Source: Macrostomum lignano (Eukaryota). From it: a stretch of 45,186 bases of DNA. Positions 1-38,368 of this stretch are shown here, one piece after another. Every line of letters begins with the position of its first letter. Within the stretch, counting starts at the first letter, position 1. The position numbers and the translations under genes were made by a program. Below the pieces are notes generated by a model, which ran no database searches, was not told the DNA's origin, and saw only the letters and a program-made list of their open reading frames with translations. The stretch is taken from assembly GCA_002269645.1 (NCBI GenBank), contig NIVC01000310.1, forward strand, positions 1 to 45,186, given 5' to 3'.

Positions 1-1
1 G

Positions 2-2090
2 GTCTGCGACCTCATCCGGGGCGGACCGGGTGGCGACTCCGAGCGAATCCCACCCGAGAAGCAATTCCTGTTCGAGTTGGTGACCCATGATGGCCGATCC
101 ATGGACGACTAAAAGTAGAAGGACCCCACACTCGCTGTCAGCGAGCTGAAAGTGGAATCGAACCCGGGCTGGACTCCACCCATTAGCCAGGCTGAACAGA
201 ACTTCCACTCCTGTGCTTTCGCATGGCGGCATTTCTTTGCCCGCCATGCGAGCTTTTTGCGTCACACTCTAAACTTTCTACTTATCAGTAGACGAACTTT
301 GACGGCCGGTTAATCGCAGCAAAATGCATTAGCTAGATAGGAGTTTTCAGTTTGTTAGCACTAAATCAGCTCAGGTGGTCAGCTCAGGTGATCAGCTCAG
401 GTGGTCAGCTCAGGTGGTCAGCTCAGGTGATCAGCTCAGGTGATCAGCTCAGGTGATCAGCTCAGGTGGTCAGCTCAGGTGGTCAGCTTGGGTGATCAGC
501 TCAGGTGGTCAGCTCAGGTGATCAGCTCAGGTGATCAGCTCAGGAGATCAGCTCTGTCTCGGTCAGACACCAACTGGCATTTCTGAAACCGCAGGTCGTT
601 AACAACAAGCGCACGGGCTACGACGTGGACAAGCTGGACTACATGAACCGGGACGCGCTCAGCCTGGGGCTGCCCAACCGCTTCGATGCGACTCGGCAGC
701 TGTCGCTGTTGCGGGTGCTGCCCTGCCCCGGCAACCGCAAGCTGCTGGTCCTGAGGGACAAACAGGTGCTGGACTACATCAACCTGTTGATCTCGCGGAG
801 GATGCAGCACTACCTGGCCTACCAGCACGTGAAGTCGGTAGCCTTTGAGAAAGTGTAAGAATTATGCCGTCCCCTGTCACAGGATTTCCCTGTGATCGCC
901 AATTTTCAGTCTGCTCTACTAGCAGTAGCAATATTAGAAATTCGCATGTATAAAAATCGCTAACGATAAGCTTTTATTGAGTACAGCAGAAATACAGGAC
1001 AATTGACTCAGGTCACCTCACCACCTTGCAGCCTGCAGGACGCACTGTCAGCCGCCCGACGCCACCTGCAGGCGCACCGTGACGACCCGGATGTCAACCG
1101 CTTGGCCATCCGCTACCTACTGGACGAGCCGGAGTCGCTGGAGTCGCTGCTGTGGCTCACCGACGACCGCCTCGTCGAGCTGCTCAAGCAGAGCTGCGGT
1201 CCGGAGGCTGCGCGCTTGATGAAGCAGCTGGAGGAGCGCCGGAAGTACCGCCACCTGGCCAGCGTGAGGGTGGCGCTGCACTCCACGGCCGATGACGAGG
1301 CCACGGCTGTCTACAAGAACCAGCTGGAGGCTGTCAAGATTGCGGTGACCCACTGGAACGCCTCGCGGAGCCGCAGCATCGCCGAGCTGCGCAAGTTCGA
1401 CTACGGCTGCGGGCCGCAGCACCCGCTCGACAGCGTCTTCTGCTACTCGAAGAACGGCGAGGTCAGGCAGTGCAACGGCGACGGCGATTCGGAGAGCTTG
1501 TTGGTGAGCTGGGAGTTGAGCTGGTTGGTGAGCTGGGAGTTGAGCTTGTTGGTGAGCTGGGAGTTGAGCTTGATGGTGAGCTGGGAGTTGAGCTTGTTGG
1601 TGAGCTGAGGGCTGAGCTTGTTGGTGAGCTGGGAGTTGAGCTTGTTGTGAGCTGGGAGTTGAGCTTGTTGGTGAGCTGGGAGTTGAGCTTGTTGGTGAGC
1701 TGGGAGTTGAGCTTGTTGGTGAGCTGGGAGTTGAGCTTGTTGGTGAGCTGGGAGTTGAGCTTGTTGGTGAGCTGGGAGTTGAGCTTGTTGGTGAGCTGGG
1801 AGTTGAGCTAGTATTGGCAAGGCTTCAGTGTCAGTTGAGACAAGTCTAGGCACTGACTGCTACTTACAGTAGTGAAGAGTGGTGTCGTGATAAACTTTGA
1901 TCCGACGTGTCCCTTTCAGTTCGCGGACCTGCAGCTGGCGGCGCTGCACATCACGGTGGTTCGGCTGTACGAGCGGACGGCCGGGGAACCTCCGGCCGAT
2001 GCGGCGGCCGTCAAGGAGTTCCGGCGCCGGGAGGTCGCTGACTTCCGCGAGAAGATGAGCGCCTGTGGGTTCAAGCCGACTGCTGAGTAA
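2..2090 (+). CDS. SAMHD1: SAMHD1-like HD-domain dNTP triphosphohydrolase, paralog A (5'-partial; exons <2-79, 595-854, 1032-1503, 1920-2090)
   Basis: Spliced translation ...VCDLIRGGPGGDSERIPPEKQFLFEL|VVNNKRTGYDVDKLDYMNRD...RDKQV...AYQHVKSVAFEKV|LQDAL...WLTDD...FDYGCGPQHPLDSVFCYSK...ESLL|FADLQ...GFKPTAE* matches SAMHD1 motifs ([33 protein letters not shown].K). All introns are GT-AG with compatible phases (0,2,0). The first donor (TTG|GTGACC at 79/80) is weak and shifted one codon relative to paralog B. Confidence 0.9.
367..553. repeat. 13-bp minisatellite (CAGCTCAGGTG[G/A]T), SAMHD1-A intron
   Basis: About 14 tandem copies read directly. Confidence 0.95.
1495..1810. repeat. 24-bp minisatellite (AGCTTGTTG|GTGAGCTGGGAGTTG) spanning the SAMHD1-A exon/intron junction
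   Basis: About 13 copies. The unit comprises the last 9 exon nt plus the first 15 intron nt. Confidence 0.95.
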
Positions 2091-6270: not shown

Positions 6271-9200
6271 TCACTCGACCGTCTTCATGAAGCCCAGGGC
6301 CGCCAGCCCACTCAGAAACTCCCGCTCCGCCTCCTGCCGCTGCCGCCCCTGTCCTGGAGACCGCTCGTACAGCCGCACAATGCTCACGTGGATGGCGGAG
6401 AGCAGCAGGTCCGGAAACTGCGGCCAGGGTTGTGGTGGGGTGAGTTGGAGTGAGTTGGAGTGAGTCGGATTGAGTTGGAGTGAGTTGGGGTGAGTCGGAG
6501 TGAGTTGGGGTGAGTTGGAGTGAGTCGGATTGAGTTGGAGTGAGTTGGAGTGAGTTGGAGTGAGTTGGGGTGAGTTGGAGTGAGTTGGGGTGAGTTGGAG
6601 TGAGTCGGATTGAGTTGGAGTGAGTTGGAGTGAGTCGGATTGAGTTGGAGTGAGTTGGGGTGAGTCGGAGTGAGTTGGGGTGAGTTGGAGTGAGTCGGAT
6701 TGAGTTGGAGTGAGTCGGATTGAGTTGGAGTGAGTTGGGGTGAGTTGGAGTGAGTCGGATTGAGTTGGAGTGAGTCGGATTGAGTCGGATTGAGTTGGAG
6801 TGAGTTGGGGTGAGTTGGAGTGAGTTGGAGTGAGTCGGATTGAGTTGGAGTGAGTTGGGGTGAGTTGGAGTGAGTTGGGGTGAGTCGGATTGAGTTGGAG
6901 TGAGTTGGAGTGAGTTGGGGTGAGTTGGAGTGAGTTGGAGTGAGTCGGATTGAGTTGGAGTGAGTTGGGGTGAGTCGGATTGAGTTGGAGTGAGTTGGGG
7001 TGAGTTGGAGTGAGTTGGAGTGAGTCGGAGTGAGTTGGGGTGAGTTGGAGTGAGTTGGAGTGAGTTGGGGTGAGTTGGAGTGAGTTGGAGTGAGTTGGGT
7101 GAGTTGGGTGAGTCGGATTGAGTTGGAGTGAGTTGGATTGAGTTGGAGTGAGCTGGAGTGAGTTGGAGTGAGTTGAATTGAGTTGGAGTGAGTTGAATTG
7201 AGTTGGAGTGATTTGGATTGAGTTGGAGTGAGTTGGATTGAATTGGAGTTGGATTAAATTGGAGTTGGATTAAATTGGAGTGAGCTGGATTGTGTTGGAT
7301 TAATTGGAATTAGTTGGAGTGAGTCGGATTGAAAACTGGCTAGCAAAGAAACCCTCACTGCAATATTTAGCGAACGGACGAAAACAACAGGCATTAAGCG
7401 AAACTCGTCTGGCTTATTGGCTCCGTTCCCGCGGTGCGCCAGGCATCTCTGGTCCGCGTCAAACCCCAGCCCCTGATCCGAGCCAGCCCGGGCATCAAGT
7501 TTCGAGGGAACCGTGGGAGCGAAGGACGCGGCCCGCTTCGCAGCTTGGGGGAGCCGGCCTGCAGCTTCTCTGCTTCTAACAGGAAGCAAGGGCACTGGGA
7601 GAGCCCATGGGAAATGAAAGCCCGCACTCCGGACTGTCTGCTGGCTTCAATGTGGGAATGTCCTGCATGGGGGAAATGCAGAAGGGAAATTCTTTTGAAA
7701 CCAATCTACAGGGGAATCTTGGGTGGGGGGGGCGGTCGATTTCGGGGAAATCTTGAGAATGAATTTCGGGAGAAATGTCGAGAAGGAATCTCCGAGGGAA
7801 ATCTCGAGAAGGAATCTCCAAGGAAATCTCTAGAAGGAATCTCCAAGGGAAATCTCGAGGATGAATCTCCAGGGGAATCGGCAGGGGAACCTCAAAGAAT
7901 CTCCGCGAAAATCCTGGGGAATCTCAGGAGAGATCTGGTGCGGAGGCAAATATCGAGGAGGAATCTATGGGGAATCTCCTGGGGAATCTCAGGGGTAGGC
8001 AGCTCACCAGCAGGTCCTTCTCGCTGCAGCGCTGGCCCGCTGAGCCCCGCTTGGAGTAGGCGAACACCTCGTCAAGCGGGTGGTTCAGCCCGCTGCCGTA
8101 GTCGATCTTGCGGAACTCCGCAATGGTGCTGTAGTCCGAGGCCTGCGGGTTCCGCCTGTTCCAGTCCTCCGAGAATGCCCGCGCCTTCTTTATGGCCGAT
8201 TCGTACTTCCGCTTGTCCTCGGGGTCCTTCAAGGCCAACCGCGCCGTGGCCACGAGGCTGTACATCTTGCGGGTGACCAGACGCTGCATCAGGTGCCGGG
8301 CCGTCGGGCCGCAGTGCTCCGTCAGCAGCAGCTCCAGGCGGGCGTCCGTCAGCCAGCATAGCGTCTCCACGGAGCCGGAAGCCTCCAGCAGGTAGCGGCG
8401 GGCGTCCGGGTTCACTGACTCCACGGGCTGCGACTCCAGGAAGCTGCGGCCCGCCTGCAGCGCGTCGCCCAGGCTGCGGTGGCGTTCAGGGTGGCAGTTG
8501 GGGTGGCAGTTGGGGTGGCAGTTGGGGTGGCAGCTGGGGTGGCATTGAGTGGCAGTTGGGGTGGCAGCTGGGGTGGCATTGAGTGGCAGTTGGGGTGGCA
8601 GTTGGGGTGGCATTGAGTGGCAGTTGGGGTGGCAGTTGGGGTGGCAGTTGGGGTGGCAGTTGGGGTGGCAGTTGAGGTGGCAGTTGGGTGGCAGTTGGGG
8701 TGGCAGTTGGGGTGGCAGTTGGGGTGGCATTGAGTGGCAGTTGGGGTGGTAGTTGGGGTGGCAGTTGAGGTGGCAGTTGGGGTGGCAGTTGAGGTGGCAG
8801 TTGGGGTGGCATTGAGTGGCAGTTGGGGTGGCAGTTGGGGTGGCAGTTGGGGTGGCATTGAGTGGCAGTTGGGGTGGCAGTTGGGGTGGCAGATGAGATG
8901 GCAGTTGGAGTGGCATTGAGTGGCAGTTGGGGTGGCAGTTGGGGTGGCATTGAGTGGTAGTTGGGGTGGCAGTTGGGGTGGCATTGAGTGGCAGTTGAGG
9001 TGGCAGTTGGGGTGGCAGTTGAGGTGGCAGTTGGGGTGGCAGTTGGGGTGGCAGTTGGGGTGGCAGTTGAGGCCAGACCACAGGTGCTGGCCACAGATCA
9101 AAGGCATTAGAAAGCAGCTCACAGCTTCTCAAAGCCGATCACTTTGATGTGCTGGTAGCCAACATAGTGGTTGACCCTGCGGGCCACCAGCAGCTGGATG

Positions 9201-10972
9201 TACTCCAGCACCTGCTTGTCGCGAATCACCAGCAGGTTGCGGCCCTGCCCGCACGGCAGCACCCGCAGCATGGCGAGCTGTCGCTGGCAGTCCAGCTTGT
9301 TGTTGAGGCCCAGGAAGTAGGAGTCCCTGTTGATGTAGTCCCACTTGTCCACGTCGAACCCGGTCCTCTTGTTGCTGATGATCTGTGGGAAGCGATTGCA
9401 GTGCGGCTGCTCATACAGAAACTGCCTCCCAGGCCCCCCTCACCTCATACAGAATCTGCCTCCCAGGCCCCCCTCACCTCATACAGAATCTGCCGCCTAG
9501 GCCCCCCCTCACCTCATACAGAAACTGCCGCCCCGGTGGGATCTCCTGATCCTCGGGCCCGCCCAGAATCAGCTGCTTGATGAGCTCCCGGTTGGTGCCG
9601 CCCGAGGCTTCGTGCCGCCTCCGCATGAAGTCGGCGAACTCGGCGGCGCCCGACAGACCGGAGCCGATGACTTGGTCAATGATTCTGTCAACCAGCTGGA
9701 CACTCATGCCCTCATGGTGATAGTCTGCGAACCTGTCTCCCGTCTTCACCAGCACCTCCCACAGGTGAGAGAAGGGCCCGTGGCCCAGGTCGTGGCAGAG
9801 GCCGGCCAGCGCCACGCACAGAACTTCGTCGTCCGTCAGCTCCGTCTCCAGGGTCGTGGCGCGGCTCTTCAGAGTCTTGGCGAGCTGCCAGGCCAGGTGG
9901 TATGTGCTGAAGTGATCGGAGGGGTGCGGCTCAGCCAGTCACTCGCTGCTCAGCTCCAGGCACTCCGCCAGATCACCCAGTCACTCATTGCTCAGCTCCA
10001 GGCACTCCGCCGGATCAGCCAGTCACTCGCTGCTCAGCTCCAGGCACTTCGCCAGCTGAGCCAGTCACTCGCTGCTCAGCTCCAGGCACTCCGTCAGCTC
10101 AGCCAGTCACTCACTGCTCAGCTACAGGCACTTCGCCAGCTGAGCCAGTCACTCAGCCAGCTCAGCCAGTCACTCAGCCAGCTCAGCCAGTCACTCAGCC
10201 AGCTCAGCCAGTCACTCAGTCAGCTCAGCCAGTCACTCAGCCAGCTCAGCCAGTCACTCAGCCAGCTCAGCCAGTCACTATGCTCACCCAACAGAGTGCT
10301 CAAATCGGGTGTGGGTGCCAGACGGGTACACCAGGTAGGTGACGCCCAGCTGCTTGAGGTGTCGCAGCCGCTGGAACTCCGGCGCGCCCATTATGAGCTC
10401 GGCGAACTTGTGCAACTCGATGGTGCCATGGATCGGATCATTGATGACCTGGCCAGGTGAGGGAGAGTTGCAGATTGCTGTGACATGCAAGCTGATCACT
10501 GGCTACCAATGAGGCACTCTGCACCAAAAACCCACTTCAGCATCTCCCTTAGCCAGTTAGCTTGCATGAGGGAGCTTTAATAATTAAAGTAAATTTGTTA
10601 AATTTATCACACCAAAAATTTAGTGCAAAAATATACCTTTAAACTCTGCAAAAAGGTTCAGTAACAATAGGTTTTTGGTATTAAATATATAGGAAAACTT
10701 AGTCAGACACAAAATAATGTAATAAATCTAAATAAATAATTGATGTCAAAATTCTAGAAAAGATATAAGTGCACAAGTTCAGGTCAGAAGCTGGTCTAGC
10801 TTAGATGCCAAATTGAGGGCTTTTAATAGAAAAATCAGTCAATATTGCTCTATAATATAGAATTCATTCACAAATCATGTGAGGCATATTTTATCAATTT
10901 CAAATATCAGTCCTAACATGTTTGAAGATTTACCTTTGGTAGAGACAGGTTTGAACCATTACAAGTGGCCAT
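6271..10972 (-). CDS. SAMHD1: SAMHD1-like HD-domain dNTP triphosphohydrolase, paralog B, SAM-less, 488 aa (exons 10972-10934, 10448-10288, 9906-9513, 9382-9123, 8473-8008, 6417-6271)
   Basis: [13 protein letters not shown]|VINDPIHG...[11 protein letters not shown]...HTRFEHSVG|TYHLA...[18 protein letters not shown]...HHEGMS...FLYE|[20 protein letters not shown]. The H-HD-D metal ligands are intact. Exon lengths (39,161,394,260,466,147) give a continuous frame with GT-AG introns at the same positions as paralog A. The 39-nt first exon is my best candidate (ATG...AAG|GTAAAT, phase 0) and is less certain than the others. Confidence 0.92.
6439..7330. repeat. 10-bp satellite (GAGTGAGTTG / GATTGAGTTG), last intron of SAMHD1-B
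   Basis: Tandem copies abutting the acceptor at 6418-6420; degenerate towards 7330. Confidence 0.95.
7745..7995. repeat. Degenerate GG(A/G)AATCTC repeat, last intron of SAMHD1-B
   Basis: Irregularly spaced GAAATCTC/GAATCTC motifs just downstream (in transcript sense) of the donor at 8007. Confidence 0.7.
8489..9072. repeat. 12-bp G-rich minisatellite (GGGGTGGCAGTT), SAMHD1-B intron
   Basis: Tandem copies with a GGCATTGAGT variant; source of the CHPN, ATPT and LPPQ pseudo-ORFs. Confidence 0.95.
9410..9528. repeat. ~33-bp repeat duplicating the SAMHD1-B exon end and donor
   Basis: On the - strand, TTCTGTATGAG|GTGAGGGGG occurs three times; a fourth copy lacks the GT. Confidence 0.85.
9930..10279. 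repeat. 21-bp/42-bp compound minisatellite (CAGCCAGTCACTCAGCCAGCT), SAMHD1-B intron
   Basis: 42-bp units at 9930-10140 grade into 21-bp units at 10140-10279. Confidence 0.92.
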
Positions 10973-11463
10973 GCTGAATTCTTTGCTGGTCTTTGAAGAC
11001 TCTACTGAAATTTTAAATTATGAAACTTTTGTTAAAAAACTAATAATCATGCTATGCAAATACAGAGATCATGCATTAAAGACATTATCTCTTAAGGTCA
11101 TGCTAACTTGTATGCACTTTGTATTTTTTAAATGTTAAATTTAGTAAAAAGTGCAATAGTTTATATTATGAAAAAAAACATTTAGAAGGAATAAATTAGA
11201 TGTAGAACAGTCTAGATATGCTTATAAACTATATATTTGATCTATAGGAACAAAATTAAAATGGTTGCAATATCAGATTGAGATACAGTCTATTACCTAT
11301 CTATGATTTATCTAATATGTAAAATTATATTGTTTTAAACTTTTAATGACAATTGGTAAATATTTAAGTCTAAGTAAGACTCTCTCTAGTCTAACTAAAT
11401 TACTATAATATACCTAGGCCTAAACTAAGCTATAAGCATATTACAATCTAGTAGGTAGGCCTA

Positions 11464-14218: not shown

Positions 14219-17200
14219 TCACAGCTTCTCCAACAGCCGGTCGTTGAGCCCCTCCCGGTACGGCTTGTCGATCGGGTAGAAGTGCATCAGCAGCAGGGCC
14301 AGGCAGACGCACACGATGGGCCCGGGGCCGAGCAGGTAGCGCAGTGCCAGGGCCACAGAGTACGGCTGCTCGCACGAGTTGCTGTCGTAGCCGCTGAAGC
14401 TGAGCACCAGCTGCGAGAGGGCGAGGCTGAGCCCGGAGGCGAACTTGGTGAAGAACACGTACAGGGAGTAGAAGGTGGCCTCCCTGCGCTCCCCAGTGCG
14501 GCAGTAAAAATCATCGATGACGTCAGGCAGCATGGACCAGGGCAGCAGCATGGCCACCGAGATGGACACGCCGGACACGCCGATGACTGCGTAGTAGGCG
14601 GCGACCAGTGGTCGTGGCGGGTCTCCTTCTAAATTTTCGCGCCACCCAAATTTTTTCGCGCCATAGGTATCTATATATACTATACAGCTAAGAATACCCA
14701 ACAAATTCAGACATGCACATGTGAATATGAAGGTAAAAATAGTTATGGAGGTGCAGAACATCATGAAATTTAATTATTCAAATGGGTGCCTGGAGTTTAA
14801 AGCTTCTTAATGAAAAAATAGCGCAAAAATGGGGGAATATTTTTCATATTTTCGCGCCATTAGCCATCCGCATTTTTCGCGCCATGGTCACAGAATTCGC
14901 GTATTCGCGCCATTTTCGCGCAGGCGCGAATTCGCGCCACCGCCACGACCACTGGCGGCGACGCTGTTGGGCGGCAGCGCCGTGGCCAGCATCAGACAGG
15001 GCAGCTGCGGCTGCGGGTTCGGGGCGGGAGGGCTTTCTGAGTGAGTCACTGCATGGGCTGGCAGCGCATGATGAGTAGCGTCTCAAGAGCCTGATTTGAA
15101 GTGCCTTAGACCCAGAGTGGTGCTTTGAGTTCTAACGGGACACCTTGAGTCCTAATGTGATAATCCTGAGTCCTGGTGTGATAAACTTGAGTCCTGATGT
15201 GATAATCCTGAGTCCTGGTGTGATAAACTTGAGTCCTGATGTGATAATCCTGAGTCCTGGTGTGATAATCCTGAGTCCTGGTGTGATAATCCTGAGTCCC
15301 ATGGTGTGATAATCCTGAGTCGTATAACTTCCGGCTAGGATGGAGGTCAGACAGAGGCTTACTATAGAAGATTTCGTCTCCAGACCGGGAGAAACCTCAG
15401 GAGCCAGATTGAGAACCCGATTGTAAAACAATCAGCAGCACTCCAGCTGCAGCTCACCAGCAGCCCAATCATGAAGATTCGCTTCTTGCCGAACCTGCCG
15501 CTCATCCTGGCCCAGAACGGCACCAGCAGGACGGCCACGGTGAGCACGGTGAAGATGCCCGAGTTCATGTGGCCGCCCATGCCGAGGCTGTGTGTGGTGT
15601 ACAGGCCCAGGTTGGCCTGCACCGTCTGCGGGGAGGGCAGCAAGTCCATATGGAGCTGCTTCAGTCCCTGGATCACTTTTGAGAGCTGAATAAATTCTTC
15701 ACAACTGACATGAGTTGAGTGAAAATCAAAAGCGTCACTGCATCAGTTTCGCAAATACCAGGGGTAAATGTACCCTTCCTGGCGCAATGCCTTCGGCGAC
15801 ATCGTTCCACATCCAGTGCTGACGGCAGTTCTGCCCGTTCCGCTGACTCCTGAGCACTCACAAGCGCGCCAACACCGACAACCGCCGGCCAATTTTCCTG
15901 CGCAAACCCCAAATTACGGTGGCTTCCCACGGGATCAAACCAAGGATCGTGGCCCGAGAGTAAGGCGCATTTACCGCTGAGCTGCTCTGCCCCAAGCAAT
16001 TGTGGAGCATTTGAAGAATTTGTGGAGCATTTGGTAAAGATTTAACATTTTTTTCAGAGAAAAAGTCCAGCTCAGTCCAGTCTTGGGGGGCTTCGATTTC
16101 CAGCTGATTTTGCGACCCACCTGAATGCCCAGAGACATGCAGAGGAAGGCCAGCATGAGCAACACGTATGGCCGGAATGCCAGGACGCTGCGCACGTTGC
16201 TCAGCAGGGAGTCCCGCCTGGCGTCCAGCCGGACCCGCTCCCGGATGCCGAAGGTGGCGAACAGACCGCAGGCGAAGTAGATCCCGGCGATCACCAGCGC
16301 GGCGAGGGCGTAGCCGCGACGCTACGAGGAAAATGCATGATGTTGAAGAACGTTTGGGTTTAAACTGTCAGCTGAGTCCCGATACCCGAGTCCCGATACC
16401 CGAGTCCCGATACCCGAGTCCCGATACCCGAGTCCCGATACCCGAGTCCCGATACCCGAGTCCCGATACCCGAGTCCCGATACCCGAGTCCCGATACCCG
16501 AGTCCCGATACCCGAGTCCCGATACCCGAGTCCCGATACCCGAGTCCCGATACCCGAGTCCCGATACCCGAGTCCCGATACCCGAGTCCCGATACCCGAG
16601 TCCCGATACCCGAGTCCCGATACCCGAGTCCCGATACCCGAGTCCCGATACCCGAGTCCCGATACCCGAGTCCCGATACCCGAGTCCCGATACCCGAGTC
16701 CCGATACCCGAGTCCCGATACCCGAGTCCCGATACCCGAGTCCCGATACCCGAGTCCCGATACCCGAGTCCCGATACCCGAGTCCCGATACCCGAGTCCC
16801 GATACCCGAGTCCCGATACCCGAGTCCCGATACCCGAGTCCCGATACCCGAGTCCCGATACCCGAGTCCCGATACCCGAGTCCCGATACCCGAGTCCCGA
16901 TACCCGAGTCCCGATACCCGAGTCCCGATACCCGAGTCCCGATACCCGAGTCCCGATACCCGAGTCCCGATACCCGAGTCCCGATACCCGAGTCCCGATA
17001 CCCGAGTCCAGAAAATTTTCACGGCACTGGAAGCCATAGAAAATTCATAAAGCTGAGGCGTCGCTCACTTCCGCCTGCAGCTGTTCGGGCGAGTCCGCCC
17101 CGCCGGAGTCGCCGGCTCCGCAGTCGGCCGCCAGGCGGTGGCGGCCGCTGACGGCGCCGAAGACGCCGGTGCCGATGATGGTGAACAGCAACTCGAAGCC

Positions 17201-20200
17201 GATTCTGCAGGCGGTGGCGCCGTCCTTGTCCTCAGCGCTGTTGGAGATCAGCATGGTGGAAGAGGCGTAGGGCACGTGGTAGCACTGCGGGTGGGGCCGG
17301 GATAAAAGTGCGATGGGGAGTGGAAGCTGGACAATGGTAAGCTGGACAATTTCCTCGAGACGTCTCTATTAAAAAGCAGTCAAGTACTCGTATTTAAAGC
17401 AATGCGGCCAAGTCCTTTTCTTCAAAAGCCATGCACTGGTTTGAATTCGGGGGCTGACAGAGCGAAATCCAAGGAAAATTTGATGCTGCAAAAAATAACC
17501 TCAGCGGTCCTTGGTTCGAATTTTTTTCAACCAAAGCGTATGCGTGAGGGAACTTCAGATCCAAGCAACTTGGACTTTAGTCGCGGCTGCTCACACCCCC
17601 CCCTGTTTATTGGTTCATTCTTTATCAACGAAACCGCTCTCGATGGCCAAACCTTCCAGGAGACCTGGAAACTCGATTTGTATACTCAAAATCCGATTCG
17701 CGTACTCCAAATCCGATTCACGTACTCAAAATCCGATTCACGTACTCAAAATCCGATTCACGTACTCAAAATCCGATTCACGTACTCAAAATCCGATTCA
17801 TGTACTCAAAATCCGATTCACATACTCAAAATCCGATTCACGTACTCAAAATCCGATTCACGTACTCAAAATCCGATTCACGTACTTAAAATCCGATTCA
17901 TGTATTCAAAATCTGATTCACGTACTCAAAATCCGATTCACATACTCAAAATCCGATTCACGTACTCAAAATCCGATTCACGTACTCCAAATCCGATTCA
18001 TGTATTCAAAATCTGATTCACGTACTCAAAATCCGATTCACGTACTCAAAATCCGATTCACGTTCTCAAAATCCGATTCACGTACTTAAAATCCGATTCA
18101 TTTATTCACGTACTCAGAATCCGATTACACCGTACTCAAAATCCGATTCACGTACTCAAAATCCGATTCACGTACTCAAAATCCGATTCATATACTCAAA
18201 ATCCGATTCACGTACTCAAAATCCGATTCACGTACGTAAATCCGATTTACGTACTCAAAATCCGATTCACGTACTCAGAATCAGATTCACGTACTCAAAA
18301 TCCGATTCACGTACTCAGAATCAGATTCACGTACTCAAAATCCGATTCACGTACTCAAAATCCGATTCACGTACTCAAAATCCGATTCACGTACTCAAAA
18401 TCCGATTCATATACTCAAAATCCGATTCACGTACTCAAAATCCGATTCACGTACTCAAAATCCGATTTACGTACTCAAAATCCGATTCACGTACTCAGAA
18501 TCAGATTCACGTACTCAAAATCCGATTCACGTACTCAGAATCAGATTCACGTACTCAAAATCCGATTCACGTACTCCAAATCCAATTCACGTACTCAAAA
18601 TCCGATTCACGTACTCAAAATCCGATTCACGTACTTAAAATCCGATTCATGTATTCAAAATCTGATTCACGTACTCAAAATCCGATTCACATACTCAAAA
18701 TCCGATTCACGTACTCAAAATCCGATTCACGTACTCCAAATCCGATTCATGTATTCAAAATCTGATTCACGTACTCAAAATCCGATTCACGTACTCAAAA
18801 TCCGATTCACGTTCTCAAAATCCGATTCACGTACTTAAAATCCGATTCATTTATTCACGTACTCAGAATCCGATTACACCGTACTCAAAATCCGATTCAC
18901 GTACTCAAAATCCGATTCACGTACTCAAAATCCGATTTACGTACTCAAAATCCGATTCACGTACTCAGAATCAGATTCACGTACTCAAAATCCGATTCAC
19001 GTACTCAGAATCCGATTCATGTACTCAAAATCCGATTCACATACTCAAAATCCGATTCACGTACTCAAAATCCGATTCACGTACTCAAAATCCGATTCAC
19101 GTACTTAAAATCCGATTCATGTATTCAAAATCTGATTCACGTACTCAAAATCCGATTCACATACTCAAAATCCGATTCACGTACTCAAAATCCGATTCAC
19201 GTACTCCAAATCCGATTCATGTATTCAAAATCTGATTCACGTACTCAAAATCCGATTCACGTACTCAAAATCCGATTCACGTTCTCAAAATCCGATTCAC
19301 GTACTTAAAATCCGATTCATTTATTCACGTACTCAGAATCCGATTACACCGTACTCAAAATCCGATTCACGTACTCAAAATCCGATTCACGTACTCAAAA
19401 TCCGATTCATATACTCAAAATCCGATTCACGTACTCAAAATCCGATTCACGTACGTAAATCCGATTTACGTACTCAAAATCCGATTCACGTACTCAGAAT
19501 CAGATTCACGTACTCAAAATCCGATTCACGTACTCAGAATCAGATTCACGTACTCAAAATCCGATTCACGTACTCAAAATCCGATTCACGTACTCAAAAT
19601 CCGATTCATATACTCAAAATCCGATTCACGTACTCAAAATCCGATTCACGTACTCAAAATCCGATTTACGTACTCAAAATCCGATTCACGTACTCAGAAT
19701 CAGATTCACGTACTCAAAATCCGATTCACGTACTCAGAATCAGATTCACGTACTCAAAATCCGATTCACGTACTCCAAATCCAATTCACGTACTCAAAAT
19801 CCGATTCACGTACTTAAAATCCGATTCATGTATTCACGTACTCAGAATCCGATTACACCGTACTCAAAATCCGATTCACGTACTCAAAATCCGATTCACG
19901 TACTCAAAATCCGATTCATATACTCAAAATCCGATTCACGTACTCAAAATCCGATTTACGTACTCAAAATCCGATTCACGTACTCAGAATCAGATTCACG
20001 TACTCAAAATCCGATTCACGTACTCAGAATCAGATTCACGTACTCAAAATCCGATTCACGTACTCAGAATCAGATTCACGTACTCAGAATCAGATTCACG
20101 TACTCAAAATCCGATTCACGTACTCCAAATCCGATTCACGTACTCAAAATCCGATTCACGTACTCAAAATCCGATTCATATACTCAAAATCCGATTCACG

Positions 20201-22266
20201 TACTCAAAATCCGATTCACGTACTCGAAATCCGATTTACGTACTCAAAATCCGATTCACGTACTCAGAATCAGATTCACGTACTCAAAATCCGATTCACG
20301 TACTCAGAATCAGATTCACGTACTCAAATCCGATTCACGTACTCAGAATCAGATTCACGTACTCAGAATCAGATTCACGTACTCAAAATCCGATTCACGT
20401 ACTCCAAATCCGATTCACGTACTCAAAATCCGATTCACGTACTCCAAATCCGACTCACGTACTCCAAATCCGATTCACGTACTCAAAATCCGATTCACGT
20501 ACTCCAAATCCGATTCATATACTCAAAATCCGATTCACGTACTCAAAATCCGATTCACGTACTCAGAATCAGATTCACGTACTCAGAATCAGATTCACGT
20601 ACTCAAAATCCGATTCACGTACTCAAAATCCGATTCACGTACTCAAAATCCGATTCACGTACTCAGAATCAGATTCACGTACTCAAAATCAGATTCACGT
20701 ACTCAGAATCTGATTCACGTACTCAAAATCCGATTCACGTACTCAAAATCCGATTCACGTACTCAAAATCCGATTCACGTACTTAAAATCCGATTCATGT
20801 ATTCACGTACTCAGAATCCGATTACACCGTACTCAAAATCCGATTCACGTACTCAAAATCCGATTCACGTACTCAAAATCCGATTCATATACTCAAAATC
20901 CGATTCACGTACTCAAAATCCGATTCACGTACTCCTAATCCGATTTACGTACTCAAAATCCGATTCACGTACTCAGAATCAGATTCACGTACTCAAAATC
21001 CGATTCACGTACTCAGAATCAGATTCACGTACTCAGAATCAGATTCACGTACTCAAAATCCGATTCACGTACTCAGAATCAGATTCACGTACTCAAAATC
21101 CGATTCACGTACTCCAAATCCGATTCACGTACTCCAAATCCGATTCACGTACTCAAAATCCGATTCAGGTACTCCAAATCCGATTCACGTACTCCAAATC
21201 CGATTCACGTACTCCAAATCCGATTCACGTACTCAGAATCAGATTCACGTACTCAGAATCAGATTCACGTACTCAAAATCAGATTCACGTACTCAAAATC
21301 CGATTCACGTACTCAAAATCCGATTCATATACTCAAAATCCGATTCACGTACTCCAAATCCGATTCACGTACTCCAAATCCGATTGACGTACTCCAAATC
21401 CGATTCACGTACTCAGAATCAGATTCACGTACTCAAAATCCGATTCACGTACTCAAAATCAGATTCACGTACTCCAAATCCGATTCACGTACTCAGAATT
21501 AGATTCACGTACTCCAAATCCGATTCACGTACTCAGAATCAGATTCACGTACTCCAAATCAGATTCACGTACTCAAAATCCGATTCACGTACTCCAAATC
21601 CGATTCACGTACTCCGAATCCGATTGACGTACTCCAAATCCGATTCACGTACTCAGAATCAGATTCACGTACTCAAAATCCGATTCACGTACTCAAAATC
21701 CGATTCACGTACTCCAAATCAGATTCACGTACTCAAATCCACATCATCCATGGCGAGTCTGTTGACTGCTGCTGGGCTCTGGATTCCGCTCTATATCTTA
21801 CTGGCGCGACATGATCGGGAAGGTCTGCACCCAGAAGGCACACTGGGTGCTGCAATTGCTATTTCAATGAATGCTCCGTGTCTCACCGTGATGCAGGCGC
21901 AGTAGGCCAGGTAGCTCAGCAGGTGGTAGGAGAACGCAGAGCCGGCGCTGCCGCTCAGCCACATGGCCAGGAAGGCGGCCGGGCCCAGCGCGGTGGCCGC
22001 GGCCAGCCACGGCTTCGTGCGGCCGCACCGGGTTCGAGTCCGCAGCACCAGCTGGCCAACCAGCGGGTCGGTGGCGGCGTCCCACAGTCTGCCCGCAAAG
22101 GTGATGGCGGACACCTGGGCAGGACTGAGGCGCACAGCCTCCAGCAGGTAGATGCTGAAGAAGAAGCCGCAGATGTTGCTCGTCATCTGCAGTGGCGGCG
22201 CGGCCAGGCCGAACAGCAGCTTCCGGCACAGCGACAGGCGGGCTGCGGGGGCCGAATGCGCAGACT
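14219..22266 (-). CDS. MFSD2A: MFSD2-family (MFSD2A/B-like, MelB/GPH-type MFS) lipid transporter; one exon interrupted by a MITE; start exon not fixed (exons 22266-21887, 17284-17069, 16321-16121, 15625-15458, 15004-14955 + 14597-14219)
   Basis: Motifs GFFFSIYLLE, GRLWDAATDPLVG, CYHVPY, LLPWSMLPDVIDDF, EATFYSLYVFFTKFASG and YPID match MFSD2 proteins. Introns are GT-AG and phase 0. A candidate start exon (MTDLTSQLIGNGKTK|gtatta near 22634-22678) is in frame only with the second AG of the acceptor, so it is unconfirmed. A versus B orthology cannot be decided from the sequence. Confidence 0.88.
14606..14954. mobile_element. 349-bp hAT-type MITE inserted in an MFSD2 coding exon
   Basis: Perfect 15-bp TIRs (CAGTGGTCGTGGCGG 14606-14620; CCGCCACGACCACTG 14940-14954) and a perfect 8-bp target duplication (GCGGCGAC at 14598-14605 and 14955-14962). 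Subterminal TTCGCGCCA repeats are present. Removing the element and one TSD restores ...PPNSVAAYYAVIG... Confidence 0.93.
15148..15320. repeat. 21-bp minisatellite (TGTGATAATCCTGAGTCCTGG), MFSD2 intron
   Basis: About 8 copies. Confidence 0.92.
16374..17008. repeat. 14-bp minisatellite (GAGTCCCGATACCC), MFSD2 intron
   Basis: About 45 copies; no variant unit seen. Confidence 0.97.
17681..21737. repeat. ~4-kb 20-bp satellite (CGTACTCAAAATCCGATTCA), MFSD2 intron
   Basis: About 200 copies with point variants and higher-order blocks. Confidence 0.97.
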
Positions 22267-22269
22267 CTG

Positions 22270-22481
22270 GGTGAGTGAGTGAGTGAGTGAGTGAGTAAGT
22301 GAGTGAGTGAGTGATTGAGTGAGTGAGTGAGTGAGTGAGTGAGTGAGTGATTGAGTGAGTGAGTGAGTGAGTGAGTGAGTGATTGAGTGAGTGAGTGAGT
22401 GAGTGAGTGAGTGAGTGAGTGAGTGAGTGAGTGAGTGAGTGAGTGAGTGATTGAGTGAGTGATTGAGTGAGTGAGTGAGTG
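22270..22481. repeat. (GAGT)n microsatellite abutting an MFSD2 acceptor
   Basis: About 50 tetramers; reads (ACTC)n on the transcribed strand immediately before CCCAG. Confidence 0.97.
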
Positions 22482-23891
22482 AACTAGCTCCTAGTCACAG
22501 TATGGGATCAGCAGGCTAAGTCGCAAGCCATTCAGTGAATCAGGACACCATATAATAAACTTCGGCCTACATTGAACAACATATTAAGTGCTCTAGACCA
22601 TGCAGGTTAAGCAAAAAAGATCGTATTTAATACCTTGGTTTTGCCATTGCCAATCAGCTGCGATGTCAAGTCGGTCATTTTTAAATGATTAGGTCTTGCC
22701 TTGCAGCTGCCTTCGCACTAATAGCTGTAGCTACAGTGTTTGCAGATCAGGAGCTCAGTCCATGGAGAAACCGTCTATCTGAATGCATTCAATAATGTTT
22801 GCAGAGGCAGACCTGTCGAGCTGTGTTGAATAAATTTTGCCGAAGCTCCTAACTGTCCGGCAATCTCAGAAGCAATGTATAGCACATGCAGGCTGCTACA
22901 GCTCCAATTGATCGAGTGACTCAGCTCAGTGACACCGCGTTATCAACAACTCGACAGCCTGCTGACTGTACGCTGATATTGCATTGCTAAATATAATGAC
23001 ACGCACGCTGTACTTTGTACCATTTGAACTCAAATTGTACATCAGCATGCAGATTGCAACGTAATCCATACGCTGAATTTCGTTATTTTAGTGCAGCTCG
23101 GAAAAGCTGCGTGTCACAATGAATGTACGCTTGTGCGCTACATTTATATTAATACACAGCACTACAATTTTGCGAACATGCAGCATAACACATGCAGTTA
23201 TATTGATTTTGTCAGCCAATTTAATACTCGTAGTTTAGCCAACCGAAGTTAAGAATTCCCATTTATAGGGAGCAGCTGCATGGAGACTATCAGTCTTCTT
23301 GTCCATAGTGTATAGGCTTGCAGTGTAGGCGGGAAAAGGCATGTAGAATCAATATTGTAGGCCTTATCTTTAAGTCTCAAGACTCAATAAAGCTTTATGG
23401 GGGTCCGTGTTTTTACGGAAGGGAACGGCAGATGCATGAGCCGAGGACAGGCCGATCGACGTACAGCCCGCGATCGAGACGGAGCCCGAGAGGGGTTGCG
23501 CAATTTTTAATTACCGAGACGGAATCAAACGCCAAGACGAAAGAATACAACATACACGTGTATAAGTATAAACTCGGTATAGCCTCGAGCGGTGTGCCAA
23601 CTTAAGGCGGGTTCTCCTTTACATGTACATGTCATATTAGCAGATACTGTATAATAATGTAATTATGTGCAGACAAAATATGGGAAAATACTAGATGCCT
23701 ATTACTATGGTCTTGCCATCTGGAAATGTGTCTAGAGATGTTGAGAAAAAATATTGCGTAGTGGATATTCAGGGGACTATTCTACGAGTATATTCAAATG
23801 TTTTACTACGTGTAACAATTTGAAGGCACGTTCGTGCGTGTCGTAAATTTCCCTTTTTAGGGTCTTTCAAATTCTCATAGCTAATGTAACT

Positions 23892-25678: not shown

Positions 25679-26439
25679 GAATTCTTATATAAATTGATAA
25701 TTACTTGGCCTTAGTATAATAAGTTATTTGTATTAGACAGTATATTTCAAATGTATTATTAGCCAAATAATTAAGGAATTAAGGTCAAGGTCAAGCAAGG
25801 AGGATGGTTAAAAGAAGTCTTTAGATCTATCATATGACTATATTAGTTTCACTTAGCATTACTATTATATGCTAATATAGTCATATCCTATTAAAAACAA
25901 TATTAATATATAATAGCCCCTAGGCTAGCCATATCTATATGGATAGATGATCTATGGATACAATATCCTTTAGTATATAAAGGTAAATAGCTATGCTTAT
26001 ATATTCTTAATCTGCAAAGAAGTGGAGTGGCATAATATTATTTATATCATATATGCCTTTATAATGAGAGGCATATCATCTGGGCTTTTTGCCTATGTAA
26101 GAAATGTAAAAAATGCCTTTTATCTTCAATGAGTTGAATGGACTATAAAAATAAAATCTAATAATAGTTTTTGCCAAAACATTGCATTGAAGTAGATATT
26201 GGAATTTGAGAAGCTATAGTATTTTTATGGTATAAAAACCCTGAATGAATGATTGCATTGTAGATATAATGAGGAAGTCAATTTAGTATCTTTAAGGGAA
26301 GCCTTCTAGATATATTCTAGATACATTAGATATATATAGCCTCATATAATATATATGCTTATATACATATGTAGTCCTTTATGATTTATAATTTATAAAT
26401 ATCTTGATCGCTGAGTATCATTCAGGCCTCATTGCTCTC

Positions 26440-28952
26440 ATGGAGGTGGACAGCCCTGACGAAGACTCTGGTGACATCCCGCCAGAGCCGGTGTGCCGCA
26501 GGCTCTGCGACCAGTTCGCCGAGATCACGGGCACCGACTCGGCCTTTGCGCTGATGATGCTGCAGAACAACGGCTGGTCCCTGCCAGCCGCTCTGGACCG
26601 CTGCTTCGGTGGCGACGCGCCAGCCACCCTGGCGCTGCCGGCTGCGGCCTCCAGCAACGAGGATCCGCGCCAGCTGCGCGTGATGTCGTGGAATCTGGAC
26701 GGCCTGACGGACCAGCAGGTGGAGGCGCGGACGCGGGCCGCCATCGCTGTTCTGCGGGATGCCGAGCCGCACGCCGTCCACCTTCAGGTGAGCGCCGGAG
26801 CTCATGTGGGTTTGAGCACCTGTGCTCTGGGGTGCTTTGATTCTGATGGAGCCTCAGTTCCATAGTGCTGTGCTCTGGGGTGCTTTGATTCTGATGGAGC
26901 CTCAGTTCCATAGTGCTGTGCTCTGGGGTGCTTTCGATTCTGATGGAGCCTCAGTTCCATAGTGCTGTGCTCTGGGGTGCTTTGATTCTGATGGAGCCTC
27001 AGTTCCAAAGTGCTGTGCTCTGGGGTGCTTTGATTCTGATGGAGCCTCAGTTCCATAGTGCTGTGCTCTGGGGTGCTTCGATTCTGATGGAGCCTCAGTT
27101 CCAAAGTGCTGTGCTCTGGGGTGCTTCGATTCTGATGGAGCCTCAGTTCCATAGTGCTGTGCTCTGGGGTGCTTCGATTCTGATGGAGCCTCAGTTTCAA
27201 AGTGCTGTGCTCTGGGGTGCTTTCACTATGACAGGGAGCAGGTGCCATGAATTTGCCCGCCGCCGCCTGTGCAGGAAGTGGCTCCAGACACGCTGGACCT
27301 GCTGCGTCGCCTGCTTCGCGACCGCTACGAGTTCGTGGACGGCCGAGCGCACCCCGACGATCGCTACTTCACCGCCACGCTGCTGCGCCGCGGCCGCCTG
27401 CAGTTGCTGAGCCCCAGCCTGCACCGCTTTGAGGGCTCTCGGATGGACCGGACACTGCTGGCTGTGCGAGTCAAGTCAGCGAACGGTCCCGAGGTGAGAA
27501 TTAGCTAGTTACCAGCCAATCAGAATCTACCTAGCTATCAGCCAATCACAATCTACCTATCAGCCAATCACAATCTACCTATATCAGCTAATCACAATCT
27601 ACCTAGCTATCAGCCAATCAGAAGCTACCTATCAGCCAATCAAAATCTACCTATCAGCCATCACAATCTACCTATCAGCCAATCAGAAGCTACCTATCAG
27701 CCAATCAAAATCTACCTATCAGCCAATCACAATCTACCTGGCCTGGCTATCAGTTAATCACAATCTACCTGGCCTGGCTATCAGCCAATCAAAATCTACC
27801 TATCAGCCAATCACAATCTACCTGGCCTGGCTATCAGTTAATCACAATCTACCTGGCCTGGCAATCACAATCTACCTGGCCTGGCTATCAGCCAATCACA
27901 ATCTACCTGGCCTGGCTATCAGCCAATCAAAATCTACCTATCAGCCAATCACAATCTACCTGGCCTGGCTATCAGTCAATCACCATCTACCTATCAGCCA
28001 ATCACAATCTACCTAGCTACCAGCCAATCCGAAAGGTACAAAAACAGTCTCTGTAGGAGTTCCAAATAAATAGGTAGACGTAGCGGGGTGGGGCAGATGG
28101 CAGCCTCCCGGCTTAAAGAGGCCAACCCCTCAAACTGTGAGGGGTTGGCCCAGCCACTCAGACTGCTCCGGGAGGTCAGACAACAATGTCTACCCCGGCT
28201 CTGGCCAATCGCACGCAGGCTTACTCATAAAGGGGGCGGAATTGGAGACCTAGGAATGGGCCGGTTTACACCGGCTTGGCACGCTCGCGAAAAGGCTACG
28301 CGTACTATGAATTGGCTAGGAGAGGTGTACTCACCACAGGAATCTACTCTAGCTATCAGCCAATCAGATTATTGAGCTATCAATCAACAAATTATCTACT
28401 TTTCAACATCATTTCAGGTGCTGCTGTTGAACACCCACCTGGAGTCTACCAAGGACTTTGCGGCCGAGCGAAAGCGCCAGCTGTCCACGGCTTTGCGCAC
28501 CCTGACAGAGTCGGCCAAGCCGGCCCTTCTAGCCGGCGATCTGAACCTGCGCGACGCCGAGCTTCAGGCGATTGGCGGCCTGCCAGCGGGAGTTCTGGAC
28601 GCCTGGAGCCACTGCGGCGCCCGGCCTGAGGCGCAGTACACCTGGGACGCCACGCGCAACCGCAACATACAGGTGAGACTGCGCTCAGGTCGGCTGCAGC
28701 TCATTTCTGTCCCTACTAAATTGGAAAGAATTATTAGGCACTGAGCGATGCTTGCTACTCGCAGTAGCCGATCGCGCCCGCCCGTCCGATCCGCAGAACA
28801 TGGGCCGCGCCCGCTGCCGCTTCGATCGCATGCTGGCCTGGCGCATGCAGCCGCTGGACTTTCAGCTTGTGGGGCTGCAGCCGGCGGCCGGGACCCAGCT
28901 GTTTCCCTCCGATCACTGGGGGCTGGTGGGCCTTTTCCAGCTGCAGGACTGA
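26440..28952 (+). CDS. TDP2: Tyrosyl-DNA phosphodiesterase 2, 325 aa (exons 26440-26787, 27275-27493, 28418-28672, 28797-28952)
   Basis: N-terminal UBA-like segment (LCDQFAEITGTDSAFALMMLQNNGWSL) followed by EEP-family motifs SWNLDG, LQ|EV, NTHLES, AGDLNLRD, YTWD, RFDR and PSDHWG. All three introns are GT-AG and phase 0. Confidence 0.95.
26819..27222. repeat. 48-bp minisatellite, TDP2 intron 1
   Basis: About 8 copies of GTGCTGTGCTCTGGGGTGCTTTGATTCTGATGGAGCCTCAGTTCCATA. Confidence 0.95.
27510..28030. repeat. CCAAT-containing ~22-31-bp minisatellite (CTATCAGCCAATCACAATCTAC), TDP2 intron 2
   Basis: Tandem copies, with a remnant copy again at ~28345-28385 beyond an intervening structured segment. 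Confidence 0.9.
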
Positions 28953-36900: not shown

Positions 36901-38368
36901 GGCTGCTCAGCAAGGAAAGATGGCGTCACAAAACGCTCGGCACCGCTGCAGGATAAAAATAACTCGCGCCTGAAACTCTGCCAGCCTGCACTCTTGACAG
37001 ATTGAGTCAGCACGCAGGGAGGGGATATGGGAAGAATGCTCTGAGGGTGCTCATGCATATTCAAACTCATCCTCTTTTCAGCTTGTCGAACTGTCGAATG
37101 CCAACGGGTTTTCTCAGAGTGAGTGCAGGCTTGAGTGGCAGAAGTGGTTAACAGACAGCGAATCTGCAGTGCTGCGGCTTGCTGCAAGACTGAAAAGGGA
37201 AATCAGCAGGAAGCGGGTGCTCAGGCCGCTGATGACATGCCCGGAGTCCTTTGATCCGACCGCCACCTGCCATGACAGCAGCTGGCCTGCTGAATCGAAC
37301 CGAAGTCTGCTCAATTAAAGAGACGAACCTGATCTGAGTGCGCTCAAAGCATCCGCACTGAGCCAGAGCGGGACAGCACCTGCGAGAACTTCCTGGACCT
37401 TCCACCTGCAAGACACGGGAATAACCGATGCGCTCCTAGAGCTCAGTCTCAATAGAATTGAGATTTATGATTTTTGAATTGAAAGTCAGTTAATTGAATC
37501 TGACAATTGCAGCATGGCTCAGCCCAGGCGTCACTACAAGCATGGCATGGGGGTGACGTGACTTCCGCAAAGGTTGCGTGCTGACGTCTGAGGATAAAAT
37601 TGCGAAACAGACATTCGCTCTTTTGCAGAAAGATGGGGAGTAGAGAGCGGCATTTGAGTGTCAGCAGTGAGGCAGCAGTGAGGTAGCAGTGAGGCAGCAG
37701 TGAGGCAGCAGTTAGGCAGCAGTGAGGCAGCAGTGAGGCAGCAGTGAGGTAGCAGTGAGGCAGCAGTGAGGTAGCGGTGAGGCAGCAGTGAGGTAGCGGT
37801 GAGGCAGCAGTGAGGCAGCAGTGAGGCAGCAGTGAGGCAGCAGTGAGGCAGCAGTGAGGCAGCAGTGAGGTAGCAGTGAGGCAGCAGCGAGGCAGCAGTG
37901 AGGTAGCAGTGAGGCAGCAGTGAGGTAGCAGTGAGGTAGTAGTGAGACAGCAGTGAGGTAGCAGTGAGGCAGCAGTGAGGCAGCAGTGAGGTAGCAGTGA
38001 GGCAGCAGTGAGGCAGCAGTGAGGTAGCAGTGAGCCAGCAGTGAGCCAGCAGTGAGGCAGCAGTGAGACAGCAGCGAGGCAGCAGTGAGACAGCAGCGAG
38101 GCAGCAGGGATCTCATCAACTTACCCTTGGTGAGCTCGTGCGTGGCCAGCTTGACCTGTGAGAAGTTGCCAGTGCCCAGCAGGTCGTGCAGCCTGTAGAA
38201 GCCGACCCGCTGGCCGAGCGCCAGCTCCTTCTGCACCGCGGCGCTGTCCAGAAGCTCTTTGCTGAGCCGCGCGAATGCGCTGGGCAGCTCGTCGCTGTCG
38301 TCTTCCTGACCGCTGCCGTGGGCCGCCGCCCATGCCGTGTGCGGCACAATAGGATCACCGGCTGTCAT
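30910..38368 (-). CDS. NIM1K: NIM1-like AMPK-related Ser/Thr kinase (exons 38368-38125, 34018-33750, 31716-30910)
   Basis: LGQRVGFYRL..LGTGNFSQVKLATHELTK|EKVAIKILDKTKLD...LLSREV, HRDLKAENVF, VKVGDFGFST, TFCGSPPYAAPELF and VDIWALGVLL are NIM1K-type. Splice phases (1,0) are consistent. The protein ends in a CaaX motif (CRLL*). Confidence 0.95.
31845..32575. repeat. 21-bp minisatellite (AGCTACCTGTCCCCTTCCCCA), NIM1K intron 2
   Basis: About 34 copies; reads TGGGGAAGGGGACAG|GTAGCT on the transcript strand. Confidence 0.96.
32872..33743. repeat. C-rich degenerate repeat (CCCCATCCCCAGTT), NIM1K intron 2
   Basis: Dense C4 runs up to the donor at 33749. Confidence 0.92.
34097..35690. repeat. 29-bp minisatellite (CAGATCCTCAGACTGTGGCGCCAGCCTCT), NIM1K intron 1
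   Basis: About 55 copies; 29-aa periodicity across frames in the ORF track. Confidence 0.96.
36413..36586. repeat. 35-bp minisatellite (CCCTGTCACAGGACCTTCGCCCTCTCGTGTCCCGG), NIM1K intron 1
   Basis: About 5 copies. Confidence 0.9.
37663..38106. repeat. 11-bp minisatellite (GCAGTGAGGCA), NIM1K intron 1
   Basis: About 40 copies beginning ~18 nt after the exon-1 donor. Confidence 0.96.

Follow-up and report, generated by a model that had tools for sequence, protein, structure and literature searches.

A SAMHD1-family gene of the flatworm Macrostomum lignano with glycine at the position of the guanine-reading aspartate of allosteric site 1

The allosteric control of SAMHD1 has been studied almost wholly in the human enzyme and in engineered mutants. 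In the human protein the guanine of the activator bound at allosteric site 1 (AL1) is read by D137, Q142 and R145, and its triphosphate is held by K116 from one monomer and by R451 and K455 from a second (PMC7045340). Replacement of D137 by alanine abolishes the tetramerisation and activity induced by deoxyguanosine triphosphate (dGTP) (PMC3624423), and the D137N substitution changes the activator from guanosine triphosphate (GTP) to xanthosine triphosphate (XTP) with otherwise normal kinetics (PMC7311409). Here we describe a gene, termed B (Mlig030115), of the free-living flatworm Macrostomum lignano, in which the position of D137 is naturally occupied by glycine. It lies on a complete contig of 45,186 bp from assembly GCA_002269645.1, which we refer to as the window, together with part of a paralog, A. 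We find that B is a transcribed and selectively maintained member of the SAMHD1 family that arose by duplication in the flatworm lineage, and the residues described below indicate that its regulation is probably altered relative to canonical SAMHD1.

The window is eukaryotic in character, with short exons and introns filled with minisatellites. Gene B runs on the minus strand from 10999 to 6271 in six exons bounded by AG/GT splice sites (Table 1). This model, which comes from an RNA-seq-guided annotation (PMC5730564), is exactly that of PAA85647.1 ('BOX15_Mlig030115g2, partial'; P0001), with a product that is 100% identical. Translation probably begins at the ATG at 10972-10970 (MATCNG...), and an in-frame stop is present eight codons upstream of the annotated 5' end. 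When the protein was scanned with Pfam, an HD match above the cut-off (E = 5e-8) was the only domain found; no SAM domain was detected, the protein beginning 13 residues ahead of the HD core. An upstream exon encoding a SAM domain was rejected, as the human SAM region gave no significant tblastn match and the reading frame meets a stop immediately before exon 1. Caenorhabditis elegans ZK177.8 and most family members outside vertebrates likewise have no SAM domain (PMC10485159, PMC12042053), so that its presence does not define the wider SAMHD1 family.

The full-length gene B protein gave top PDB matches that were all SAMHD1 (E about 1e-55), with bacterial HD phosphohydrolases at 1e-27 or weaker, and its top database matches outside Macrostomum, where named, were mostly SAMHD1 or SAMHD1-like, metazoan proteins among them. 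Bacterial dGTPase models scored far under their cut-offs on this protein. An AlphaFold2 model was obtained with a predicted local distance difference test (pLDDT) of 89.8 and a predicted template modelling score (pTM) of 0.91, and when it was compared with the PDB using Foldseek, 49 of 50 among the matches listed were SAMHD1 crystal structures (human and pig cores), with template modelling (TM) scores of 0.73-0.85, those for human cores being 0.76-0.85. The metal-binding HD motif comprises H73, H114, D115 and D219, which fall at human H167, H206, D207 and D311. We conclude that gene B encodes a SAM-less SAMHD1-family HD-domain protein.

It can be seen from the phmmer alignment of exon 2 with residues 117-170 of human SAMHD1 (7ujn_A, E = 3e-16), which contains no gaps, that glycine stands opposite D137. 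This agrees with an earlier reading of the DNA made from its letters (the sequence-only reading), which had reported a GGC codon at the D137 equivalent in a collinear, gap-free stretch. That reading had also split the peptide as K/V, and the lysine equivalent to K116 is indeed the last codon of the upstream exon; it gave the start of the segment correctly as 10448, but the peptide that it quoted extends to 10362, past the end at 10380 that it assigned. Its attribution of guanine specificity in AL1 to D137, Q142 and R145 is supported (PMC7045340), as is its claim of a fully retained active site. B was aligned to its 120 best-matching homologs together with human SAMHD1, column counts being taken over 125 sequences with cluster members, and all of the catalytic and substrate-pocket residues are kept, B having equivalents of R164, H167, H206, D207, H210, H215, H233, D311, K312, Y315, D319, R366, Y374 and Q375. 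In the AlphaFold2 model the glycine, Gly43, forms part of a two-residue turn between helices 36-42 and 45-52 (pLDDT about 98).

The guanine-reading triad is thus G-Q-R in B and D-Q-R in paralog A. With regard to the triphosphate clamps of AL1, K116, R451 and K523 are kept in B, and K455 is replaced by serine in B and by arginine in A; serine is found at this column in seven sequences of the alignment, three of them outside the Macrostomum A and B copies. At allosteric site 2 (AL2) B keeps eight of the ten positions N119, V156, F/Y157, D330, R333, R352, K354, N358, H376 and K377, the deviations being glutamate at N358, where aspartate is common among relatives, and isoleucine at K377. The F157 position is tyrosine in both A and B. 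A B-specific Q140E substitution was considered as compensation for the lost carboxylate and was set aside, as it cannot be judged without coordinates and glutamate is present there in 8 of the 117 relatives that keep the aspartate.

From the sequence, fixation, selection and fold of B we infer an enzyme activity and a changed activator specificity along the following lines. As the catalytic centre is intact, B most likely still hydrolyses deoxynucleoside triphosphates (dNTPs). Its AL1 is without the guanine-reading carboxylate (D137G) and without one of the two lysine/arginine triphosphate clamps (K455S), but retains, with AL2, the contact residues K116, N119, Q142, R145, D330, R333, R352, K354, H376, R451 and K523. 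Nucleotides would therefore still be expected to bind at the AL1/AL2 interface, with an AL1 that has lost specificity for guanine; binding at AL1 may be weaker, or its specificity may be relaxed to purines or to 6-oxopurines, such that the nucleotide signal to which B answers would differ from, or be broader than, that of A with its canonical D-Q-R triad. We put at about even chances the reading in which B hydrolyses dNTPs and nucleotides continue to serve as glue at AL1/AL2, with an AL1 no longer specific for guanine and a regulatory input unlike that of A. The sequence-only reading had offered three options for B, namely independence of an activator, use of a different activator, or work only as a partner subunit. 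K455S, the altered alpha13 helix and missing C-terminal tail of both paralogs, and the asparagine or serine found at the D137 column in other paralogs, which shows that variation in AL1 is not confined to B, all bear on the choice among these.

The same residues could be taken to mean that B is still a conventional enzyme activated by GTP or dGTP, in which the contacts of Q142 and R145 with O6 and N7 of guanine, together with a water molecule in place of the aspartate, would suffice, the glycine only lowering affinity. Conservation of Q142, R145, K116, R451 and K523 would fit with this, as would the persistence of three of the five hydrogen bonds to guanine described for the human and fungal proteins (PMC12042053, PMC7045340) and the GTP dependence of the C. 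elegans ortholog, which likewise has no SAM domain (PMC10485159). However, loss of the D137 side chain in the human D137A variant is not tolerated in this way, the altered specificity of D137N indicates that this side chain sets specificity (PMC3624423, PMC7311409), and B has suffered a second loss in AL1, K455S. The aspartate is, moreover, kept in some 90-95% of homologs, which argues that it matters. We consider a conventionally activated B to be unlikely.

The rarity of glycine at this column can be seen from two samples. Among the 125 best hits 118 have aspartate, and glycine occurs only in the M. lignano B copies, the other deviants being serine in Watersipora and asparagine in Biomphalaria and Styela. 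Among 151 segments of 150 representatives of clusters at 50% identity, there are 137 with aspartate, 12 with asparagine, one with serine and none with glycine; 130 of these segments have the triad DQR and nine have NQR, the rest being DQH, DQK, SQH, NQH, NLR, NKK, DDR and DER. Asparagine or serine at the D137 column was found in SAMHD1-like paralogs of Physella acuta, Biomphalaria pfeifferi, Argonauta hians, Maylandia zebra, Chanos chanos, Watersipora subatra and Styela clava (carriers are listed in Table 1). These belong to molluscs, fish, a bryozoan and a tunicate, and some of them have R145H as well. In these samples, which take in approximately 270 other homologs, glycine is unique to B, but departures at AL1 recur in extra SAMHD1-like copies.

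It had been suggested in the sequence-only reading that GGC might be a polymorphism or a sequencing error. A single base does separate GAC from GGC, and all of the data are from one inbred line. However, GGC is found identically in four separately assembled loci that have the same convergent A/B pair, namely the window, NIVC01002977.1 (L001), NIVC01000671.1 (L002) and NIVC01000636.1 (L003). L001 and L002 equal the window at every aligned base of B exons 1-5, save one-base indels in L002, and their B introns are 96.7-99.8% identical to those of the window. L003 carries a diverged homeolog, B2, which keeps GGC in spite of 39 nucleotide differences in the aligned coding sequence; within exon 2 there are three synonymous and no non-synonymous differences between B and B2. 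Protein models from the ML2 assembly (P0123 and P0003) read ELIMGAPEF and thus also have the glycine. The genome of M. lignano is neopolyploid, its three subgenomes differing by about 2% (PMC10733133), and it is plausible that the four loci correspond to these subgenomes plus some assembly redundancy. The presence of the codon in three further loci is a strong argument against a base-calling error, and the suggestion is refuted by its retention in the diverged homeolog within an exon whose surrounding changes are synonymous; we regard the chance that the glycine is an error or a private polymorphism as negligible.

Not all of these copies are intact. In L002, gene B lacks one base at the donor of exon 2 (GGG to GG, at about 22054) and has a one-base gap in exon 3 (within 21281-21673), which leave an annotated protein, P0121, of only 328 amino acids; both lie in a homopolymer or minisatellite context of a PacBio-based assembly and may be artefacts. 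In B2 (L003 21896-21960, minus strand) the final 28 nucleotides of exon 3 are exchanged for other sequence with an in-frame TAG, and the annotated product has 201 amino acids, with exons 4-6 downstream remaining as intact open frames. None of the splice paths that we tried by manual inspection around the rearranged end keeps the frame, and B2 has been either truncated recently or misassembled within a minisatellite. The exon 3 donor of B (…TTCTGTATGAG/GTGAGGGGGG…) lies within the unit of a 34-nt minisatellite, of which the window has 3.6 copies and B2 about 18 (L003, approximately 21230-21890). Each copy of this unit is a potential alternative donor for exon 3.

The damaged copies raise the question of whether B is redundant and on the way to becoming a pseudogene, with D137G as a tolerated loss of function. 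We estimated the synonymous (dS) and non-synonymous (dN) divergence, using the L003 homeolog for comparison; the window, L001 and L002 do not differ from one another at aligned bases, as noted above. For B and B2, dS was 0.0585 and dN 0.0174, giving a dN/dS of 0.30 that is significantly below 1 (Fisher p = 2e-4), and for A and A2 the values were 0.038, 0.0045 and 0.12, respectively (p = 1.7e-5). The higher ratio of B is in line with decay, as are the rearranged exon 3 of B2 and the L002 indels, if these are not artefacts. On the other hand, all catalytic and most allosteric residues of B are intact despite divergence to 52% identity with A, and B strays from the consensus no more often than A does: unique departures from the family majority, at positions where the other copy conforms, number 26 in B and 33 in A (chi-square 0.83, not significant), so B is as constrained as A. 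Polarising the amino-acid changes between B and B2 by A and the consensus was ambiguous, with about four derived in B and about three in B2, all at variable columns. We conclude that B is under purifying selection, and that incipient loss of the gene is a very improbable account of the glycine.

Only the 3' part of paralog A falls within the window; the contig does not reach its N-terminal exons, which include the codon equivalent to Asp137. At full length, the A proteins P0124 (L002) and P0002 (L003) read ELIMDRPQFQRLR, the aspartate codon being GAC in L002 and GAT in L003, a synonymous change. A and B are convergent, tail to tail, with stop codons 4.2 kb apart in the window, and they share an intron directly after the K116 codon. 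They are 52% identical to each other and their next relatives are 31-44% identical, which identifies them as lineage-specific duplicates. P0124 has departures of its own at H162K (histidine in 99% of relatives) and W313L (tryptophan in 95%), so that A is not simply a canonical copy.

The two paralogs also have in common an unusual dimer-dimer interface. In and around helix alpha13 they differ from near-invariant residues at I349L, C350V, Y360I, F363L, L369Q/N, D361N/Q, H364I/V, R371Y and R372L/V, the residues of B at human D361, H364 and R372 being glutamine, valine and valine. Both end near human residue 583 and are without the C-terminal tail that carries the cyclin-dependent kinase (CDK) site, human T592. 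T138, which is invariant in 117 other homologs, is arginine in A and alanine in B (window 10385-10383). Tetramerisation of human SAMHD1 is impaired by each of the substitutions D361K, H364K and R372D and by truncation at 583 (PMC7045340). The alpha13 changes and tail loss being common to both copies, we infer that the element linking oligomerisation with allostery had probably been remodelled before A and B diverged.

A shared interface of this kind, more hydrophobic through D361N/Q, H364I/V and R372L/V, makes co-assembly of A and B plausible, and B might then be inactive or poorly active alone and contribute, as a partner or regulatory subunit, to mixed A/B tetramers with a different activation threshold. 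AL1 is a composite of two subunits, the triad and K116 coming from one and R451/K455 from the other (PMC7045340), and A and B are adjacent, convergent and kept together in all four loci. Such linkage is, however, the default for tandem duplicates and says nothing about physical interaction. In addition, no complementary (charge-swap) substitutions were seen between the A and B interfaces, and B has a complete catalytic site under selection, for which a purely regulatory subunit would have no need. This arrangement therefore seems to us rather unlikely; were B to work only with A, it would be, to our knowledge, the first evidence for a heteromeric SAMHD1.

Several points weigh against the proposal that B is an active dNTPase with a retuned AL1. 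The nearest engineered change, human D137A, is dead, and if B behaved alike it would be inactive by itself. Retention of Q142, R145 and R451 could stem from structural roles and not from nucleotide binding. The selection test is limited to copies that have diverged little (dS 0.06), of which B2 looks truncated. The ML2 and Mlig_3_7 assemblies draw on common PacBio reads from the same inbred line, DV1 (PMC5730564). To date the D-to-G change, orthologs of B from further species of Macrostomum or from other flatworms were sought among 5.8 billion proteins; only M. lignano sequences exceeded 52% identity, and nothing was added by the library of 50%-identity clusters. Finally, a literature search returned nothing on SAMHD1 in Macrostomum, on flatworm SAMHD1 and its biochemistry, or on the gene identifier of B.

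A wider version of the retuned-AL1 proposal is that A and B form a two-enzyme system in which A senses GTP and B is either constitutive or retuned, for example to adenosine triphosphate or its deoxy form (ATP/dATP), inosine triphosphate (ITP) or XTP, duplication having split the regulatory input. We offer this tentatively and hold it to be doubtful. If it were true, dNTP catabolism in a regenerating, stem-cell-rich flatworm would be gated by two nucleotide pools and, taken with the natural asparagine and serine variants of molluscs, fish, bryozoans and tunicates, the specificity of AL1 would appear as an evolvable dial across SAMHD1-like paralogs. An active B would likewise point to a route to SAMHD1 regulation that is independent of GTP or retargeted.

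The positions of these features, of the repeats that dominate introns 2-5 of B and of the neighbouring genes are given in Table 1. The 4 kb that separate the stop codon of A from that of B are likewise filled with tandem repeats.

Table 1. Positions of gene B, paralog A and other features in the window, with the carriers of asparagine or serine at the D137 column
Feature	Position	Strand	Remarks
Gene B exon 1	10934-10999	-	5' untranslated region, ATG; last codon Lys = human K116 (10936-10934)
Gene B exon 2	10288-10448	-	VINDPIHG...FEHSVG; AL1 base-reading segment, G-Q-R for D-Q-R; first metal-binding His
Gly codon GGC at the human D137 position	10386-10388	-	Residue 43 of P0001
Gene B exon 3	9513-9906	-	HD motif; ends ...RQFLYE
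34-nt minisatellite	9410-9533	-	3.6 copies; unit includes exon 3 donor
Gene B exon 4	9123-9382	-	D311/K312/Y315/D319; AL2 D330/R333/R352/K354; helix alpha13
Gene B exon 5	8008-8473	-	R451 equivalent 8271-8269; Ser at K455 8259-8257; K523 equivalent 8052-8050
Gene B exon 6	6271-6417	-	Stop codon; protein end near human residue 583, no T592 tail
Paralog A, 3' part	1-2090	+	Exons 1-76 (end of exon 3), 595-854, 1032-1503, 1920-2090; 100% identical to L002 A exons
Asn/Ser carriers at the D137 column			P0030, P0050, P0099, P0137, P0145, P0158, P0160, P0204, P0213, P0229
Minisatellite in B introns	9929-10286		21/42-nt unit
Minisatellite in B introns	8489-9069		12-nt unit, x50
Minisatellite in B introns	7745-7879		25-nt unit
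Minisatellite in B introns	6436-7332		10-nt unit, x90
MFS_2-type transporter gene	~14222-16321 and 21794-22483 (exons)	-	Upstream of B, as in L001
20-nt satellite array	17683-21737		4 kb, ~200 copies, 89% matches; between exons of the MFS_2-type transporter gene
Gene with UBA-like domain	26392-28741	+	Followed, by eye, by an endonuclease/exonuclease/phosphatase (TDP2-like) part; latter not confirmed by Pfam
Ser/Thr protein kinase gene	30913-38494	-	Multi-exon; Pfam Pkinase matches
Open frame of 238 amino acids	44193-44906	-	AT-rich contig end; no Pfam match; may be a mobile-element remnant

On the evidence of its sequence B adds a further natural variant to an enzyme family that is well known and does not amount to a new kind of system, and the functional case is one of a single residue and its context. 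As this case comes from a non-medical organism and concerns a column that already varies to asparagine and serine, its interest is moderate. One close relative is the human SAMHD1 core (residues 113-626), with which B has in common the HD dNTPase fold at approximately 29-34% identity over the whole core, the catalytic residues and most of those at AL1 and AL2 being identical. B differs from it in having neither a SAM domain nor the T592 tail, and in D137G, K455S, N358E and K377I. The human D137A and D137N variants are changed at the same residue as B, and D137A drops the carboxylate as glycine does; B, however, is natural and under selection and differs at many regulatory positions, and its behaviour therefore cannot be read from the human mutants.

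Two further members resemble B in being SAM-less. C. elegans ZK177.8 (PDB 6PWY), which matches B with E = 7e-36, has tyrosine at F157 as do A and B; unlike B, and like paralog A, it keeps the triad, as Asp46, Gln51 and Arg54, and it is dependent on GTP or dGTP (PMC10485159). The SAMHD1 of Rhizophagus irregularis hydrolyses dNTPs with no need of allosteric activation and so provides a precedent for uncoupling catalysis from AL1, although it keeps D34, Q39 and R42 and binds GTP, such that its uncoupling does not come from loss of the aspartate (PMC12042053). The SAMHD1-like paralogs with asparagine or serine depart from aspartate at the same column as B, with no glycine among those checked, and they have a polar side chain where B has none. 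We know of none of these paralogs that has been characterised. Set beside these systems, B is a natural and selectively maintained protein without the guanine-specifying aspartate whose sister A keeps it, and the pair thus constitutes an evolutionary experiment on the uncoupling of activator specificity and catalysis.

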